The position numbers and the translations under genes were made by a program. From contig NW_005434657.1 in the NCBI RefSeq assembly GCF_000315625.1, positions 116,837 through 180,836 of the forward strand: a DNA stretch of 64,000 nt, given 5' to 3'. Below the pieces are notes generated by a model. The model did not search any database. It was given only the letters and a program-made list of their open reading frames with translations, and was not told the origin of the DNA. Shown here one piece after another: positions 1-56,446 of the stretch (position 1 is its first letter; the number at the start of each line of letters is the position of its first letter). This stretch comes from Guillardia theta CCMP2712. Its lineage: Eukaryota > Protista > Cryptophyta.

Positions 1-2500
1 AGTAGACCGTCAGGTCTTGGAAGGAACCGACGCCCGGTGGAGCGATGCAGACAATCGCTGGGATGGGGTTGGGAGGAACCCAGTCAGCGCAGAGGGTGTC
101 AGCATTGTTGGTACCACTGACAGCCTTGAACACGATGCTGCATGCTGTGGCAAACGTCTCCGGGGAGGAGGGAGACTGTCGGACGGAGACAGCAAGGTAC
201 TGAGAGTTGATGACTGTGTCTTGATCTGTAGGAGTTGAGTCGATGTTGGACAGGTTGGCAGCTCCGAGGATGCCTGACGGGCCTTGTCTGTCGACGTCAG
301 AGGGCAGCATGTAGTATCCCTGGATCGTGATCACGTTTCCTCCTGACGTCTGTCCCTTTGCTGGGCCCACGGGGATGGGCAGCGACTTATAAGCCGTTAT
401 GATCTGCGTCGAACGGTCTCAGCCTTGACCTCTGGCTCCTCCCCCACCTTGATGTTCGAGTCCGTCGACGCACAGGTGCCGGTCTTGAGCTGGGCATTCA
501 GAGGACAGTAGGGGCCTAGAGCGAGGTCAGCTGGTCGTCTCGCCTCCAAGCCATACGTGACATACCGACTGAGGTGTTGCAGAGAAAGGAGAGGTACTGG
601 GGAACTTCACAGCCGCACTGCTTGGAGACTGCAGCGGTCCTGTAAACGCTTCCAGCTGTTGACAATGTTCAGGTCGTCTCTACCCCGACAACTCCAGCTG
701 TTCTTTACCGTCTCGGTTCACCCGATACTGCGTGAGACCATACTTGCCCGAAAGATAATTGCCAACTCGATCCATTTCCTGCAGCGAGAGAGACTCGTTG
801 TAGATCAGTAGCTCCGCAAGGTCGATCGTTCCGAACCCTGCAGCTCCTCGTCATGTTGTCACTCTCACGTCACCATTCAACACCAGCAGACGCCCTGTTT
901 GCTTGATCCAACACTCCAAGTCGAAGTTGTTGAATTGCCGGGGGGGTGGCGTTGACGACACTGAGGGGAGGGGTGGGAGAGGCTGGAGAAACGAAGTGAG
1001 GGGACGTCGCTTGTTAAGTGAGATGTACCAACAAACCCATCGATGAAACCTTCTGCCAGGCTGCCGTTCACTCGCAGAGACACGATATGCCAGTTGTTGG
1101 AGCTCTGATAAGATCGGGCACCTGATGGCCCCCATAGATCTAGACATGCTGTTGGGATGCTGCGGTCCCATTCATCTCCTGCATCCAATCCTGCAGTTCA
1201 TTCACCTCGAAAAGCTGCAGCCTCCCTGAGCCGAGCAGACAGCAGCGCAACTGTTATCGTCGAGCTTCTCTCCGTACTCCAACTGTGATATTCAAACATC
1301 AAATCCTGTATTTTGATACTGTGCATGGCTTTGCGTACGTTGAGGGTTGAGAAGGATGTGATTCGCCCCTGCTCGCATTGAGGACAACTAGTCCCCGAGC
1401 ATCCCAACCCTTGCAGGCCTGAGTTGTTGACGCAGCTCGTGCAGGAGGAGAAGAGCGACAGACTAGCCAAGGAGTTGCTCGCGGAGCTCTGTGCGATCGT
1501 GTCAGGAGAGAAGAATGCAAGCAAGCAAGCGTCACTTCGGCTAGGTTGAGAATGCCCATCACTCCTGTATCGCCCACGTTTTGATGTGTGCGAACAACAA
1601 GGAAGATGGTGTATCTGAGAGACACAGGCATGACTGAGGAAGCAGCCGAAGTTCAAACCTGTTCTGTTGGAAGGGGTTCGTCTCGAAACCTGTCCCTATC
1701 ACTCAATTGCTGCTTGACTCTCTATGATCGCAAACCTGCTTGCCCGTTGGTTTCCATCTGCAGAAATTGACCTGAGGAAACGCCTCAGCCATACAAGCGG
1801 CGACTCGAGGCTTTACCTTGCGTGCCCTCAGTGTTATTTCGAGAGAATCGAACTACCCCCCATCCATTCAAGACGTTGGCCTGATACGTCGGTTGCCTAG
1901 TCGTCGAGCTTCGTTAGTCGTCCCACGTGCTGAGGTAGAATGGTATGCTCTACCACATTGACACGTTCTGAACCAGTTTCTCGTTGGCTTCATTGGCTGT
2001 GAAGTTTGACTGAGATGTCTCCCTTTCAAAGATTTCGGAATGTCACTCGCCTCCCACGAGAATCTTCTGCTGGGAGCAGGACGAGGTTGAGGGCATTCCG
2101 TTGTAGCAGATGTTCGCGACGTTCTGCCTGCACGAGGACGAGGCTGAGACTCAAGCGAGAAGGATCGGATCAGTCACACCATTCGCTGACGGAGCTTCCG
2201 CTGGCAACCTTGTCTCGCAGGAAGACATCAGGCGTGTACCAGAACCTTGAAGCCGTTAGGGCGGTCACTAGCGGAGGGGCCCACCTCAGGTTAGGATGAT
2301 AGGCGTTGGGCTGCTTGTATCTGCTGCCCCGTCAGAGCCGGCGGAAGTGACGGGAACTCGCCTGGTCGTCAACGTAGTCGGTAGCTTGACACCTCCCACG
2401 CTACTGCCAGGAGGAAAGTAGGACGAGCTGCGGACAAGAGTGAGGCTCCCCTAGCAACACAAGTGAAGAGAAAGTGAGGAGAAGAGCGAGTGAGGAGAAG
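1..2500 (-). CDS. Multi-exon Cys-rich secreted/surface protein with an IPT/TIG-like repeat; 3' end runs off the window
   Basis: Minus-strand exon at ~404-200 reads IITAYKSLPIPVGPAKGQTSGGNVITIQGYY (GPxxGGxxITIxG, IPT/TIG-like). Cys-rich exon SCTSCVNNSGLQGLGCSGTSCPQCEQGR at ~1450-1360. Short GT-AG introns. Start position uncertain. Confidence 0.5.
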
Positions 2501-50607: not shown

Positions 50608-50871
50608 NNNNNNNNNNNNNNNNNNNNNNNNNNNNNNNNNNNNNNNNNNNNNNNNNNNNNNNNNNNNNNNNNNNNNNNNNNNNNNNNNNNNNNNNNNNNN
50701 NNNNNNNTCCCGGCAGTGAGTGCGACCGCCGGCCGGGCCGGCCGCTGGCGGGTCGAGGGCCCGGACCACTCCAAAGGCCGGGATGGTATGGACTCAATGA
50801 CTAAGTTTACTGCATCAGATGACTCGCCGAAGTTCGATGACTGATCAGTCTGCTAGCGTCTTCCGCGTCTC

Positions 50872-51635
50872 TCATGCTTGCTGCTTCTTTAGCGCAAGCG
50901 CGATCGCCTGCTCCGACAGCTCCCACAGCCTCCTCGCCTTCTGTGCGTCCTTGGCCTCGGCACTGACCTCCACCTCCTCGAAGGTATGCTTGCCCGGCTT
51001 CGAGTTCGACCAGAACACTCCTCGCTTGCCCTCCAGGGCATCCGACACTGCCATGGTCACCAGGCAGTCTCCCCCGAAGGAGACTGTCTCTGCTACCCTG
51101 ACCACGTTGTTGGCGATGAAGTCGAAGGCCGAGAGGAAGAAGCCTCCCTGGTCGCGGAAGAGCCCCGTCCTTGTGATGAGGCCGGGGGAGAAGCAGTTGC
51201 AAGTCACTTTGCTCCCCTTGTCCTCCAGCCGTCGCTGTAGCTCGCGCGTGAACAGCACGTTGCACAACTTGGAGTCCTTGTAAGCCTGCTCGCACAGTCA
51301 CCTTCCTCCTTCCTCGTCCTTCTCCTCCTGGTCCTCTTCCTCCTCTTCCTCCTCGACCTCCTCTTCCTCCTCGACCACTCCTCCACATCTTTTTATCTTC
51401 CCTGTCTTCACTATCATTCTGCTCCTAATTCTTCATGCTCTGCTCTTCTTCCTTACCTTGTCAGCGTCCCACCCTCCTCCGTCCACCATCTCCCAATCGA
51501 TGCCGGCGGCCAGTCCTTGCATGTCCCCGAGAGTCGCTTTCGACCCCACGTTTCCTGGAGGCACGCGCGAAGTATGTGAGTACAATGGCGGGAGAGAAGA
51601 AACAGACATGGAGGAGGAGGAGGAGCAGGAGCACG

Positions 51636-51677
<42 letters not shown>

Positions 51678-51686
51678 AGACGCAGT

Positions 51687-51719
<33 letters not shown>

Positions 51720-52650
51720 AGAAGCAGGAGCAGGAGCAGGAGCAGGATCTCATGACAGAGGAGAAAGAAGAGGTTCATAACAGAGAGGAGGGAGGAGGAA
51801 GAGGAGGATGGAAGCGGGAGGGAAGGACTGGCTAGTCACCTCCTGGGGAGCTCGGGTCGTGAACTTGGGACGCCGTCACGACGATTCTTGGCGCAGCAGA
51901 CGACTTCTCGACAGCAGGAAGCAGGAGGTTCGTGAGGTAGAAGTGACCCAGGTGGTTGGTGCCGACGGTAACCTCGAAACCATCCTTGGTGCGGGGGGGG
52001 GGAGGCCGGGCTCCCGTGTTCAGAGCCACTCCGGCGTTGAGGACGAGGACGTCAATGGGTTTGCCTGACTTGTTCCACTCGTCTGCGAACTTCTTGATGC
52101 TCGAGAGGGACGACAGGTCACATTCCATCGCCGTCAGCTCTCCAGGGCTCCTGCCCGCCTTGCTGGCCAGCAACTTCACCTCCTCCTCCACAGAGTCTCT
52201 TGCTTCCATGGCCTTCTCCATCGTCCTGCATGCGAGGAACACGTTGTATCCCCCGGCGGCAAGCTTGCATGCTGCGTCCTTGCCGATGCCGGAGCTGCTC
52301 CCTGTGATGACGATGTTCCTTGGCCCTCCAGGGGGAGCAAGAGGCAACTTAACATCGTCCTGAGCAGCTGCAGAGGTCAAGGTGGGGAGCAAGACGATGG
52401 AAGACAGCACGACCGCTGCCTCTCGCCTGTTCACCCGCGTCTCCTCCACCGTCCTCCTCCCGTCGTCACGAGCAGAGCACCGCCAGGCCCTCGCGCGAGA
52501 TGGGATTGAGCGATAGCCTGCCGAGGAAGAGGAGGAGGGGAAGGGAGAGGAGGACGAGATCCTCGTTGAAGTAAGAGGGAGGAGGGAGGGCTGGAAGGCA
52601 TGCGCGCATGACGTCGCTGCCACCGCCAGGAGGATTGTCGCTGTCGCCAT
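50872..52650 (-). CDS. Plastid-targeted protochlorophyllide reductase (LPOR)-like SDR, 3 exons
   Basis: ITGSSSGIG, LACR, CDLSSL, LVLNAG, RTKDGFEVTVGTNHLGHF, KATLGDMQGL, MVDGG, AYKDSK, TGLFR, LWELSE; leader AHA-FQP. Confidence 0.88.
51610..51747. repeat. Intronic (GAGCAG)n array
   Basis: Seen directly. Confidence 0.9.
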
Positions 52651-52821
52651 GGCAGGATTGCCCAGAGGATCGCCGGTCAGCAGGTCCTGAAAAAAACGAC
52701 CAGGAGATTTTTGTGNNNNNNNNNNNNNNNNNNNNNNNNNNNNNNNNNNNNNNNNNNNNNNNNNNNNNNNNNNNNNNNNNNNNNNNNNNNNNNNNNNNNN
52801 NNNNNNNNNNNNNNNGGGAAT

Positions 52822-52896
<75 letters not shown>
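52822..52896. repeat. (CAGG)n microsatellite next to a 100-N gap
   Basis: Seen directly. Confidence 0.95.
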
Positions 52897-53004: not shown

Positions 53005-54120
53005 ATGATGATCGAAGAGGGAACAGGCTCAGCATGTAGAGGATCTTGTTGGTGGGAAGGAGCGAGTCTGAGCAGGGCGATCGTTCCGTCCCCTTGTCGT
53101 CCCTTCCTCATCCCTTCCGTGCGCAGGCAAAGGATGGAGACTGCCAGCGAGAGCAGCGTCGACATGCTCATGGATGCCTGCGCGATCGCCTTGGGCGGCT
53201 CGCTCCCCCTCCTGCATGTCAAGGGATGCTCCGCCCTCCTGCAGCCGATCCACGACGTGCTGGACGAGGTCACGAGCGAGGACTTGGGCATGGAGCAGCG
53301 CGGCACCGACGGGAGCAGCAGCGCGGTGGAGATGTACAGAGGAAGGAGCTTCTCCGTGACCGTCCTCTCCCTGCCCCCCGGTGCGTCCCTTCCCATGCAG
53401 GACCTGCAGGTGAAGGGCGAGAGGGAGGGAGAGAGGGAGGAGGAGGAGGAGGCGGAGGCGGAGGAGGGTGAGGGAAGGAGGAGGAAGAGAGAGTGAATGC
53501 GTACAGGACATGTTGATGATTTACAAAGTCTTGAGGGGAGAAGTCAGGAGAAAAGTCTACCGCAGGGTAGAAAGATCCCTTCCTCTCAAGCGAAAGTCTC
53601 GAAGGTGGGGCAGGGAGCACAACGAAGTTCAGGTTGGTCGTCCTATGGCCGCGCGCGCTCACGAGTCGTGACGTAGCGCAGGTCTGCCAACAAGGAGAGG
53701 AGGAGATCATCGATGCCTCCACGACGAGCTCAGCCGAGCTTGACGACAGCTCTCTGCTCCTCTTCACAGCCAAGACGGCAGCCGTCATGGTGATACTGAG
53801 CTTCTTGTCTTCTCTGCCTTTCCTCCTCCTCCTCTGAAGCTGATGATCCTTGCTCAGGTGCAGGTAATGAGGACGCCTCCCGCCCCTCCTCTGCTCTGAC
53901 CGCGTCCACAAAGATCGTAGCTTCTTCGACAGGCGCTCACCAGCGGGCCAAGTTCTTTGTGCTCGGGACGAAAGGTCAGGTCGAGCTGAGGACGAGCTGG
54001 ATTCTGATTCCTGTCTTGCTAGCAGAGGAGGAGGAGTTGATCAAGGAGGAGGGGGAGGCAGCGCGCAGGCACGTCCTGAACCCGTTGGATAGGCCAGGGA
54101 TCCCAAGGAAGAGGTATTGA
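53005..54120 (+). CDS. PCO/ADO (thiol dioxygenase)-like cupin lacking the His triad
   Basis: VLDEVTSEDLG...EMYRGRSFSVTVLSLPPGASLPMQDLQ|DMLMIYKVLRGEV follows the PCO/ADO pattern L..I...DVG...IY....FS..IF.LP....IPLH.HPGM.V.SK.L.G; start may be 53134. Confidence 0.65.
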
Positions 54121-54313: not shown

Positions 54314-54417
54314 TCAAGGCCTAAGCTTCTTCTGTCCCTTCTTGATGTCCTGAAGATGTTGCTTGATCCTCTCGATATCCCGGTGATGGGCAGCCTCATT
54401 CTGACAAGAGCATGCGT

Positions 54418-54450
<33 letters not shown>

Positions 54451-55470
54451 GAGGAGGCGATGCAGACGTGGAGACGAAAAGGAAGAGAAAAATGGAGGGA
54501 ACGAGCGAGGAGGGCGGGGAGGAGGGGCGAGGGGATGGACGAAAGGAGGGGACAGGGGGCAAGAGGAGGGAGGGAAACGTGAGACGCTTTACCCGCAAGA
54601 GCATCTTCCTGACTTCGCAGAATCTTTCTCTGATCTCGACTGTCTTCCTCGATTGCTCCTGCACCTCCTCATGCTGTCTCTGACATCTCTGAAGGGCCTC
54701 TTGGTAGAAGAACATGTCGTGCTGGATCTGCTTCTTCATGTTCTCCCGCTGCAGCGGCTTCTCCCTCATGGTCTCCTCGAGCTCCACCAGCTTCTTCGTC
54801 AGATACCTCGTATTGTCCACCTCCTTCCTGAACTCCTCCTTGATCACCTCAAGCACCGCCGTCTCCTCCTCCAGCCACTTCTCCAGCTGCCGTAGCTCCA
54901 CCGCCCGGCGGCTCAGCAACGCGGACCGCAGCTTCACCGCCCGCTGCATCTCGGGAGGGCAGAGCTGGAGGTCCTCGTGCGCCACTCCCCTCTGCAGATC
55001 GCTCAGCCCGATTGGGTTGTACACCGTGTGGAGGATGCCGTCCTCGTCCCTCTGTACGCTGACGCTCCCATGGATGTCGTCGGTGTTCACCTTGACCTTC
55101 TCGTGCTTCCCGTCCAGGAACAGGGTGATGGTGCCCGGCGGCTTCTTGTCAACTCTGCGGGTGATGGTCTCGTCGTTGAGAGTCTGCATGTACGCGGAGT
55201 CCAGCTGGTCCAAGATTGATACCTTCTCGTGGAGGGCCAGCGATCGGTCGATCTTTGACTGGAACTTGTCAAACATCCTGTCGCTGTCGGTCTGCAGCAT
55301 TTTGCTCATCTCAACGGGTACAACGCCTGGTATGTAACCGATGGTGAGAGGGATGCCTGTCGAAGACACCAGCCTGGCATCTGCTGCCTCCCCACCTGCC
55401 CCCCTTGCTCGCTGTTGTCGGGCCATGGCCCGTCGATGCATCAGTTCCTGCGTATCTGCCAGATCTTGGA

Positions 55471-55504
<34 letters not shown>

Positions 55505-56446
55505 TGTTGGGAGAGTACTTTCATCCGTGAACGTGCTTGTGTAAGTGACAACAGATGTAGAGGAGCTGCGGTTCAACGAACTCTCAGACCTTGACATGTC
55601 ACCCCAGCTGCTGGGCGAGGAGAGGGCGAGCTCTTGCGGAGGGCGAGTACGACGTTGAGATTCCATGGAAGAAGAGTCGAACGAGCTGTCCACGTCTTCC
55701 AGACTCTGAGTCGCATGCGATGCCCTCGAAACTATCCCCGTCTCTGCCTCGGTACCGGACTCATCCCAGGAGGACAACCCCGAGTCAGAGTCTGCTGGCC
55801 GGTAAGAAGGTTTCCTCTCTTGTCTTCTCCCTTGCGCTACCGTTGTTGTGAGAGGGAGCCTACCTCGAGCATCGTCGCCATCGACCTGGTAGTCATCCTC
55901 CATCCTTGCTTGCGCGTCCAGGGCCAGTTTGAAAGATTTCGCCATCTCCATCACGCTCCTGCGAGTTTCTTCCAGTTGCAGCATGGAAGCATCTGGAACT
56001 TCCTCGGTCACGGTCTCTGCCCTTGACAGAGAATCCTCCATTTTCTTTGTCGTCCAGACTAGCCACTCGAGGTCCGTCCTGTATCCGACATCGAGGGCTA
56101 TCATCCGCTTCTTGCGGGGGGAGGGGGTGACCATGGTAGAAGTTCCCTCCCCAGAGCCTGAGACTTCCTCCATCATCCCTCGACCGTGCCACTCAGCCCA
56201 ACAGGCGTACTCTCTTGCGTCTTCTCCAACCCACATAGCGATTTCCTCCAGCCCTCTCAACCTCCAGCCCTCAGCTCTCGGAGCAACCTGCCTCTCCTCT
56301 AACGCACGTTCTCCGCTCCTCCTCGCCGTGTCTATCCTTCGCTCTACGTCTCTCCTCCTCCTCTCTGCCTCCTCCCTCCTCCTCCTCGTCGCCTTCAGCT
56401 GCATCTCAACCTTCGCCATCTCCACCCCGAAGTCGGACATTGTCAA
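54314..56446 (-). CDS. Coiled-coil/Ser-Thr-rich hypothetical protein (an in-frame intron is likely at ~54403-54592)
   Basis: 710-aa ORF with N- and C-terminal coiled coils; the low-complexity stretch near the 3' end has GT...AG ends. Confidence 0.7.

Follow-up and report, generated by a model that had tools for sequence, protein, structure and literature searches.

The 64,000-nucleotide stretch of Guillardia theta CCMP2712 analysed here (hereafter the window; contig NW_005434657.1, positions 116,837 to 180,836 of the forward strand, with coordinates counted from its first letter) contains on its minus strand a nuclear gene of three exons, whose product of 440 amino acids is related to LPOR (light-dependent protochlorophyllide oxidoreductase). 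The gene model is identical to the database protein EKX49792.1 / XP_005836772.1 / UniProt L1JMZ3, which is named 'protochlorophyllide oxidoreductase'. The translation of exon 1 matches a UniRef entry of G. theta with 100% identity, and the window corresponds to contig C17 of the assembly. The analysis shows that this POR-like protein is a short-chain dehydrogenase/reductase (SDR) distinct from LPOR, and that it carries a conserved N-terminal leader whose last part resembles the signals of Tat, the pathway of twin-arginine translocation into the thylakoid lumen.

The gene is transcribed and spliced as modelled. Logan transcript contigs devoid of introns were found in two runs belonging to different studies, covering positions 50790/50810-51284, 51456-51553 and 51839-52656/52681 with no letter differences. 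Both introns are skipped at the modelled sites, with GT..AG ends on the minus strand, and the joint 51553/51839 is present in both runs. In the two spliced transcript contigs, which reach in the 5' direction up to 52656 and 52681, no ATG precedes that at 52650, and EKX49792.1 starts at the same residue. An upstream extra exon would be formally possible from the DNA alone, because a run of N marking an assembly gap starts at 52716, only 66 nt 5' of the ATG, and the reading frame is free of stops from the gap to the ATG; such an exon is made unlikely by the transcript contigs and by the N-terminal signal peptide.

Contigs of a third run (X13) cover the intron sequence too, hence they are apparently DNA, and one of them, of low depth, carries an additional C behind 52660, in the 5' untranslated region, which may come from an error or from a difference between strains or alleles. 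The UniRef transcript-derived entry A0A7S4JA31 (257 amino acids) loses the frame after the C run at 51999-52007 (minus strand; P-P-P-P codons) and ends early. This entry carries an assembly frameshift, since the frame of the genome agrees with that of Hanusia phi and with two transcript contigs without indel.

The leader and its conservation

The leader extends from 52650 to 52363 on the minus strand and is composed of a signal peptide, a Ser/Arg-rich transit peptide, the residues N-R-R, a stretch of 19 uncharged residues and a putative AAA|Q site, located 15 residues ahead of the Rossmann strand. The uncharged core spans amino acids 78-96, ends in A-A-A and is followed by Q-D-D, while the sequence N-I-V-I-T-G-S-S-S-G-I-G starts at amino acid 111. 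Its best 12-residue Kyte-Doolittle window has a value of 2.41, the most hydrophobic of the family. In the AlphaFold model the first ~105 residues are low-scoring except for short helices at amino acids 3-14 and 75-83, and amino acids 111-440 have mostly a pLDDT (predicted local distance difference test) value >90. A tripartite leader had been proposed at 52360-52650, corresponding to amino acids 1-97, in the initial annotation of this DNA, and the string of residues given there is found exactly in the minus-strand translation of 51841-52650.

In cryptophyte plastid proteins the signal peptide is cleaved following an AXA|F/Y rule, and Phe at position +1 is a recognised mark for plastid import (PMC5784005). 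As judged by sequence inspection, the two-part targeting sequence of complex plastids is present in the POR-like protein, with AXA cleavage, an aromatic residue at +1 and a hydroxylated, basic transit peptide. The third part of the leader has counterparts in the same organism. The alpha1 subunits of G. theta phycoerythrin have a three-part leader with a twin-arginine + hydrophobic + AXA domain (PMC5784005), and a PsbP-domain protein belonging to a lumenal family (contig C65), taken as positive control, presents a signal peptide|F, a transit peptide, L-D-R-R, an Ala-rich core and C-S-A. The POR-like protein shares with these cryptophyte lumen proteins the complete design, namely signal peptide AXA|F, transit peptide and RR + hydrophobic + AXA, and differs from them in its cargo, which is an NADP(H)-type oxidoreductase instead of an antenna subunit or a photosystem II accessory protein. 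The leader of the canonical G. theta LPOR, used as negative control, consists of signal peptide, Phe and transit peptide and has neither hydrophobic core nor AxA. Regarding the translocation machinery, a gene of the TatA/B family was found in the nuclear genome (contig C97).

The same design was observed in a second, unrelated SDR of G. theta, a Tic32/retinol-dehydrogenase-like protein (GUITHDRAFT_77282; contig C85, open reading frame 1411-2430, minus strand). Its leader contains a signal peptide before Phe, a transit peptide, and F-T-R-R-E-I-L followed by a core and V-S-A; the RR, the core and the small-x-A site are kept in Hanusia phi and in two metagenomic relatives. The GenBank model of this gene (289 amino acids) starts past the leader and therefore misses it.

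Homologues of the POR-like protein were collected by word-index searches, which gave several hundred relatives; the taxonomic range is that of the quarter bearing names. The named homologues come from cryptophytes (Hanusia), diatoms (Cyclotella, Leptocylindrus, Attheya), pelagophytes, Phaeomonas, Chrysoparadoxa and Euglena gracilis, and among green algae from Pyramimonas, Pterosperma, Pseudoscourfieldia and Tetraselmis. Thus, among named matches the family is confined to photosynthetic lineages. The complex-plastid orthologues add a hydrophobic N-terminal signal peptide ending before F, and the green-algal members have a chloroplast transit peptide and the RR domain without signal peptide, a distribution that fits the membrane topologies of complex and primary plastids.

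The leaders of the homologues are otherwise unalignable. In alignments of 25 and of 36 homologues, Arg75 and Arg76 reach at least 90% conservation, a level that no other leader column except the starting Met attains. The RR pair is present in 34 of 35 complete leaders, the remaining one having KR, at a distance of 32-59 residues ahead of the Rossmann motif and usually in the context (S/T/D/N)-R-R-x-hydrophobic-hydrophobic. The cores that follow are uncharged, 12-30 residues long, rich in Gly, Ala, Ser and Leu, and moderately hydrophobic (best 12-residue Kyte-Doolittle window 1.1-2.4). In almost all orthologues the core is followed by a small-x-small site, which is mostly A-x-A and often preceded by Pro or Gly. 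Under a strict definition, requiring RR, then at least 12 uncharged residues out of 13, then A-x-A, 30 of 33 complete leaders passed; when the leaders were shuffled 500 times, the number passing averaged 2.2 and never exceeded 7. The pattern of RR, core and AxA is beyond chance. Conservation of this pattern in orthologues had been singled out in the initial annotation as the test of its lumen-targeting proposal, and the figures above (RR at least 90% conserved in 36 orthologues, 30/33 by the strict definition) show that the motif is kept.

A reductase of the LPOR fold

Exon 1 alone scored 69 bits with the Pfam model PF00106 adh_short (cut-off 26.6), and the classical features of SDRs are all present: the Rossmann fold, the T-G-x3-G-x-G motif and the Y-x3-K motif. 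The best NCBIfam model was LPOR (TIGR01289), on which the whole protein reached 230.9 bits, the curated cut-off being 331.35, and its orthologues 192-204 bits. The canonical LPOR of G. theta, encoded by a separate, intron-less gene on contig C16, scored 366.5-367 bits; this one canonical copy agrees with the single por gene counted in G. theta by a published survey (PMC4337275). LPOR structures were also the first matches in a PDB sequence search and in a Foldseek search with the AlphaFold model, 7JK9 giving a TM (template modelling) score of 0.90 and 38% identity. The fold is hence shared with LPOR (TIGR01289; PDB 7JK9, 6L1H, 6R48), and the alignment is full-length, including the LPOR-type insertion loop.

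The residues that define LPOR are only partly kept. Column comparison showed that all algal members have in common the Gly-rich NADPH motif (T-G-x-x-S-G-I-G), Asn90 and Tyr193-x3-Lys197 (LPOR numbering). The active-site cysteines of LPOR are Cys38, Cys89, Cys199 and Cys226 (bioRxiv 10.1101/2023.04.16.537069). From these, Cys38 and Cys199 are present in almost all algal members, G. theta keeping both, and the Arg that follows Cys38 is invariant there. The column of Cys226 is occupied by Leu in the 32 algal and the 26 picocyanobacterial members of the family (32/32 and 26/26), and by Cys in 15/15 LPORs. The column of Tyr223, which in LPOR belongs to a Y-P-G-C motif, contains Ser, Gly, Asn or Thr (Ser in G. 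theta), and that of Cys89 mostly Leu, as in G. theta. In a maximum-likelihood tree, obtained by a quick method and unresolved at its base, the LPORs formed their own fully supported clade, apart from the POR-like family. Therefore, the POR-like protein differs from LPOR in lacking Cys226, Tyr223 and Cys89, in belonging to a separate clade and in bearing an extra Tat-type domain that is absent from the true LPOR of the organism. It is an NADP(H)-type SDR of the LPOR fold, a member of the family most closely related to LPOR, yet it is not LPOR. The canonical identity was rejected on the basis of the score, the hallmark residues, the position in the tree and the existence of a separate true LPOR.

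This corrects the annotation of the gene and of hundreds of metagenomic relatives that are labelled 'protochlorophyllide reductase' and fail the defining tests. Because such mislabelled relatives fail them, the numbers of por genes counted in algae and picocyanobacteria are possibly inflated.

Proposed route, alternatives and significance

Proteins that cross the membrane already folded and with a bound cofactor use the Tat system, which suits a Rossmann enzyme whose NADPH site is intact. On the evidence of the leader we consider it probable that the reductase is exported by Tat, folded and loaded with its cofactor, into the thylakoid lumen. The localisation steps, the cleavage sites, the loading of the cofactor and the substrate are those that we infer as follows. 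The signal peptide (amino acids 1-18, A-H-A|F) would take the precursor into the endoplasmic reticulum (ER), which is the outermost plastid membrane. The transit peptide (approximately amino acids 19-73) would then mediate passage over the periplastid and envelope membranes to the stroma, where it would be removed and where the reductase domain would fold and bind NADP(H). The exposed N-R-R, the moderately hydrophobic core and A-A-A would be recognised by the thylakoid Tat translocase, and the folded, cofactor-loaded protein would cross the membrane. Cleavage after Ala96 by the lumenal processing peptidase would release a soluble enzyme of ~37 kDa (amino acids 97-440) in the lumen. There it would most likely oxidise or reduce a lipophilic compound of the thylakoid from the lumenal face. 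Protochlorophyllide is an unlikely substrate, given that the pigment-contacting residues of LPOR are lost, and a xanthophyll or another isoprenoid would be the likelier one.

The cofactor, we speculate, would be either tightly held and internally recycled, or sufficient for a limited number of turnovers. Tight binding with cycling between two substrates is proposed because no lumenal pool of NADP(H) is known to us. A precedent for this working principle is the glucose-fructose oxidoreductase of Zymomonas mobilis, which is exported by Tat to the periplasm with a tightly bound NADP that is recycled between two substrates. The analogy would lie in a nicotinamide-cofactor enzyme that is folded and loaded before Tat export and acts where there is no free cofactor pool. 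The bacterial enzyme differs in having the GFO/IDH/MocA fold and in residing in the bacterial periplasm, and for the POR-like protein the tight cofactor and the two-substrate cycle are only postulated.

From the initial annotation, the three-part leader and the Tat-like RR-hydrophobic-AxA domain are thus supported, while the roles attributed to the protein are not. Tetrapyrrole binding finds no support, given the score under the LPOR cut-off and the absence of Cys226, Tyr223 and Cys89 in the whole family. A link with the lumenal phycobiliproteins of cryptophytes is not sustained either, as diatoms, pelagophytes, Euglena, prasinophytes and Tetraselmis, all of them without lumenal phycobiliproteins, have this leader and enzyme too. 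The suggested role in light sensing was pure speculation.

Several observations weigh against a lumenal location. NADP(H) is not known to be present in the thylakoid lumen, and there is no obvious supply of cofactor for a multi-turnover reductase. The closest bacterial relatives are signal-less and presumably cytoplasmic, so that the chemistry of the enzyme needs no lumenal setting. A search of the nuclear assembly of G. theta gave no TatC, which in cryptophytes is presumably encoded in the plastid. The 5' flank of the gene is broken by the assembly gap mentioned above. Finally, the G. theta core, with its value of 2.41, is placed at the hydrophobic end of the family range, and a membrane anchor would be possible for this member.

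The last point leads to a different arrangement, in which the RR-hydrophobic segment, inserted by Tat or spontaneously, would remain uncleaved and serve as an N-terminal anchor, similar to that of the Rieske protein, with the domain held at the thylakoid's lumenal side. The 19 uncharged residues of the core and the short helix modelled at amino acids 75-83 are consistent with an anchor, and a lipophilic substrate would favour membrane attachment. We consider it unlikely nonetheless, since the small-x-small site that in almost all orthologues follows the core is mostly A-x-A and often comes after Pro or Gly as in cleaved signals, and since most orthologue cores, rich in Gly, Ala and Ser and with values of 1.1-2.2, are too weakly hydrophobic to form a stable transmembrane helix.

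An arrangement on the opposite side of the membrane has also to be considered. The RR stretch could be a membrane-association element or the tail of the transit peptide, its likeness to a Tat signal being incidental, and the protein would then be located on the stromal side, where NADPH is found, as LPOR itself is a stromal-side peripheral membrane protein, and in line with the picocyanobacterial relatives, which have no signal at all. This arrangement seems improbable to us. Unless Tat recognition and lumenal cleavage are at work, it is difficult to account for a strict RR, and not any basic pair, combined with AxA across leaders that cannot be aligned. Moreover, the positive charges precede the core on its N-terminal side, so that by the positive-inside rule insertion of the segment would put the C-terminal domain in the lumen anyway. 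Finally, the canonical LPOR lacks such a segment and the PsbP-family protein of the same genome has one.

Far less credible is the identity implied by the database annotation, that of another genuine isoform of light-dependent protochlorophyllide reductase. LPOR is indeed the best-scoring family and fold, and both the LPOR-type insertion loop and Tyr-x3-Lys are present, but the protein remains 100 bits under the LPOR cut-off, the hallmark positions Cys226, Tyr223 and Cys89 are substituted as described, the LPORs form a separate, fully supported clade, and the survey that found one por gene in G. theta (PMC4337275) leaves that place to the canonical copy on contig C16. That the protein is merely secreted, the features past its signal peptide being functionless, is extremely improbable: entry into the ER needs the signal peptide only and the transit-peptide call is based on composition and the +1 Phe rule, but Phe at +1 is the cryptophyte mark of plastid import (PMC5784005), the green-algal orthologues have plain chloroplast transit peptides, and the family is found only in photosynthetic lineages among named matches.

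Tat export of the folded reductase to the lumen is therefore the reading that we prefer. A full-text search of the literature, with subscription-only papers outside its scope, found no report of a lumen-targeted LPOR-like SDR, or of any other NAD(P)-dependent SDR in the lumen, in algae or plants. The components are already known separately: Tat lumen signals, the three-part leaders of cryptophytes and LPOR-like SDRs have all been described, and the gene itself is in GenBank under an unearned name. We know of no NADP(H)-type reductase in the thylakoid lumen. The lumenal enzymes known to us (violaxanthin de-epoxidase, proteases, isomerases and peroxidase-like proteins among others) work without NAD(P)H and, as far as we know, pyridine nucleotides are generally taken to be absent from the lumen. 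If confirmed, a Tat-routed reductase that is widely conserved, is expressed and has an intact NADPH site would challenge that picture, implying either an unrecognised lumenal chemistry of pyridine nucleotides or enzymes that recycle a non-exchangeable cofactor. It would also offer a concrete handle on those steps of algal pigment or lipid metabolism on the lumen side that have no enzyme assigned. The prediction is directly testable in transformable diatoms that have the orthologue.

A broader proposal can be put forward tentatively. In cryptophytes, ochrophytes, euglenids and many green algae the thylakoid lumen might hold active NADP(H)-dependent short-chain reductases, delivered by Tat as holo-enzymes and acting on pigments or isoprenoid lipids from the lumenal side, with at least two unrelated RR-leader families in G. 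theta, the LPOR-like and the Tic32/retinol-dehydrogenase-like ones. We hold this generalisation to be possible rather than probable.

Picocyanobacterial relatives, coordinates and flanking sequence

LPOR-like SDRs occur, besides the canonical LPOR, in Prochlorococcus, Synechococcus and Cyanobium, and score ~144 bits on the LPOR model. 'LPOR-like SDR variants' of unspecified role have been mentioned in Cyanobium (PMC13588713, 2026). These proteins share with the algal family the S-G-I-G motif and the Leu in place of Cys226; unlike the algal members, they have no N-terminal signal of any kind and are presumably cytoplasmic. Because these relatives lack a signal, the RR leader is a feature of the eukaryotic members, and a cyanobacterial origin of the Tat signal was rejected. 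In the tree the picocyanobacterial clade nests inside the algal RR-bearing family, next to the green-algal members (SH-aLRT branch support 95). The nesting would fit a gene transfer between green algae and picocyanobacteria, in either direction, although long branches and an odd composition make it uncertain.

The genomic context of the picocyanobacterial genes provides a weak hint to carotenoid or isoprenoid chemistry. The LPOR-like gene divergently adjoins crtL, the lycopene beta-cyclase gene, in all 17 Prochlorococcus loci with this neighbourhood (17/42 class-2 loci), and in Synechococcus WH 8017, a single locus, it starts 2 nt past the gene of a distant HpnE/phytoene-desaturase-like flavoprotein. 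The flanks on the other side of the Prochlorococcus gene (MscS, isochorismatase) are equally conserved, reflecting general synteny, and as synteny is generally high in Prochlorococcus little weight is given to the hint.

Table 1. Positions in the window of the G. theta POR-like reductase gene and of the features of its product (aa, amino acids)
Feature	Position	Strand	Basis or remark
Whole coding region	50872..52650	-	Exon translations, identity to EKX49792.1, spliced transcript contigs
Exon 1, aa 1-270 and first base of codon 271	51840..52650	-	Donor GT at 51839-51838
Intron 1, 285 nt, GT..AG, with a CTG/CTC-rich simple repeat at 51598-51754	51555..51839	-	
Exon 2, aa 271-303, part of the LPOR-type insertion loop	51457..51554	-	
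Intron 2, 171 nt, GT..AG	51286..51456	-	
Exon 3, aa 304-440, followed by stop TGA at 50874-50872	50875..51285	-	
ER-type signal peptide, aa 1-18, M-A-T-A-T-I-L-L-A-V-A-A-T-S-C-A-H-A; predicted cleavage A-H-A|F	52597..52650	-	Sequence inspection
Transit-peptide-like region, aa 19-73, Ser/Pro/Arg-rich	52432..52596	-	Low pLDDT, no secondary structure, unconserved columns
Tat-type lumen-targeting domain, aa 74-96, N-R-R-E + uncharged core + A-A-A; predicted cleavage before Q97	52363..52431	-	
Twin-arginine codons agg cga, R75 R76	52423..52428	-	Read directly
Dinucleotide-binding motif T-G-S-S-S-G-I-G, aa 116-123	52282..52305	-	T116, G117, G121, G123 invariant
Catalytic Tyr305-x3-Lys309 (Y-K-D-S-K), equivalent to LPOR Tyr193/Lys197	51268..51282	-	Invariant in all groups
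Leu339 at the LPOR Cys226 position (P-G-L-I for P-G-C-I)	51178..51180	-	Column comparison

Assembly gaps are located on both sides of the gene, at 52716-52815 and 50614-50707, and the upstream one removes the promoter region. Just past the latter, a (CAGG)n microsatellite occupies 52820-52896. Two neighbouring open reading frames lie beyond it: one upstream of the gene at 53130-53470 (plus strand), whose translation is Glu-rich, and another at 54314-56446 (minus strand), of 710 amino acids, which is rich in Glu, Arg and Ser and, by eye, coiled-coil-like.

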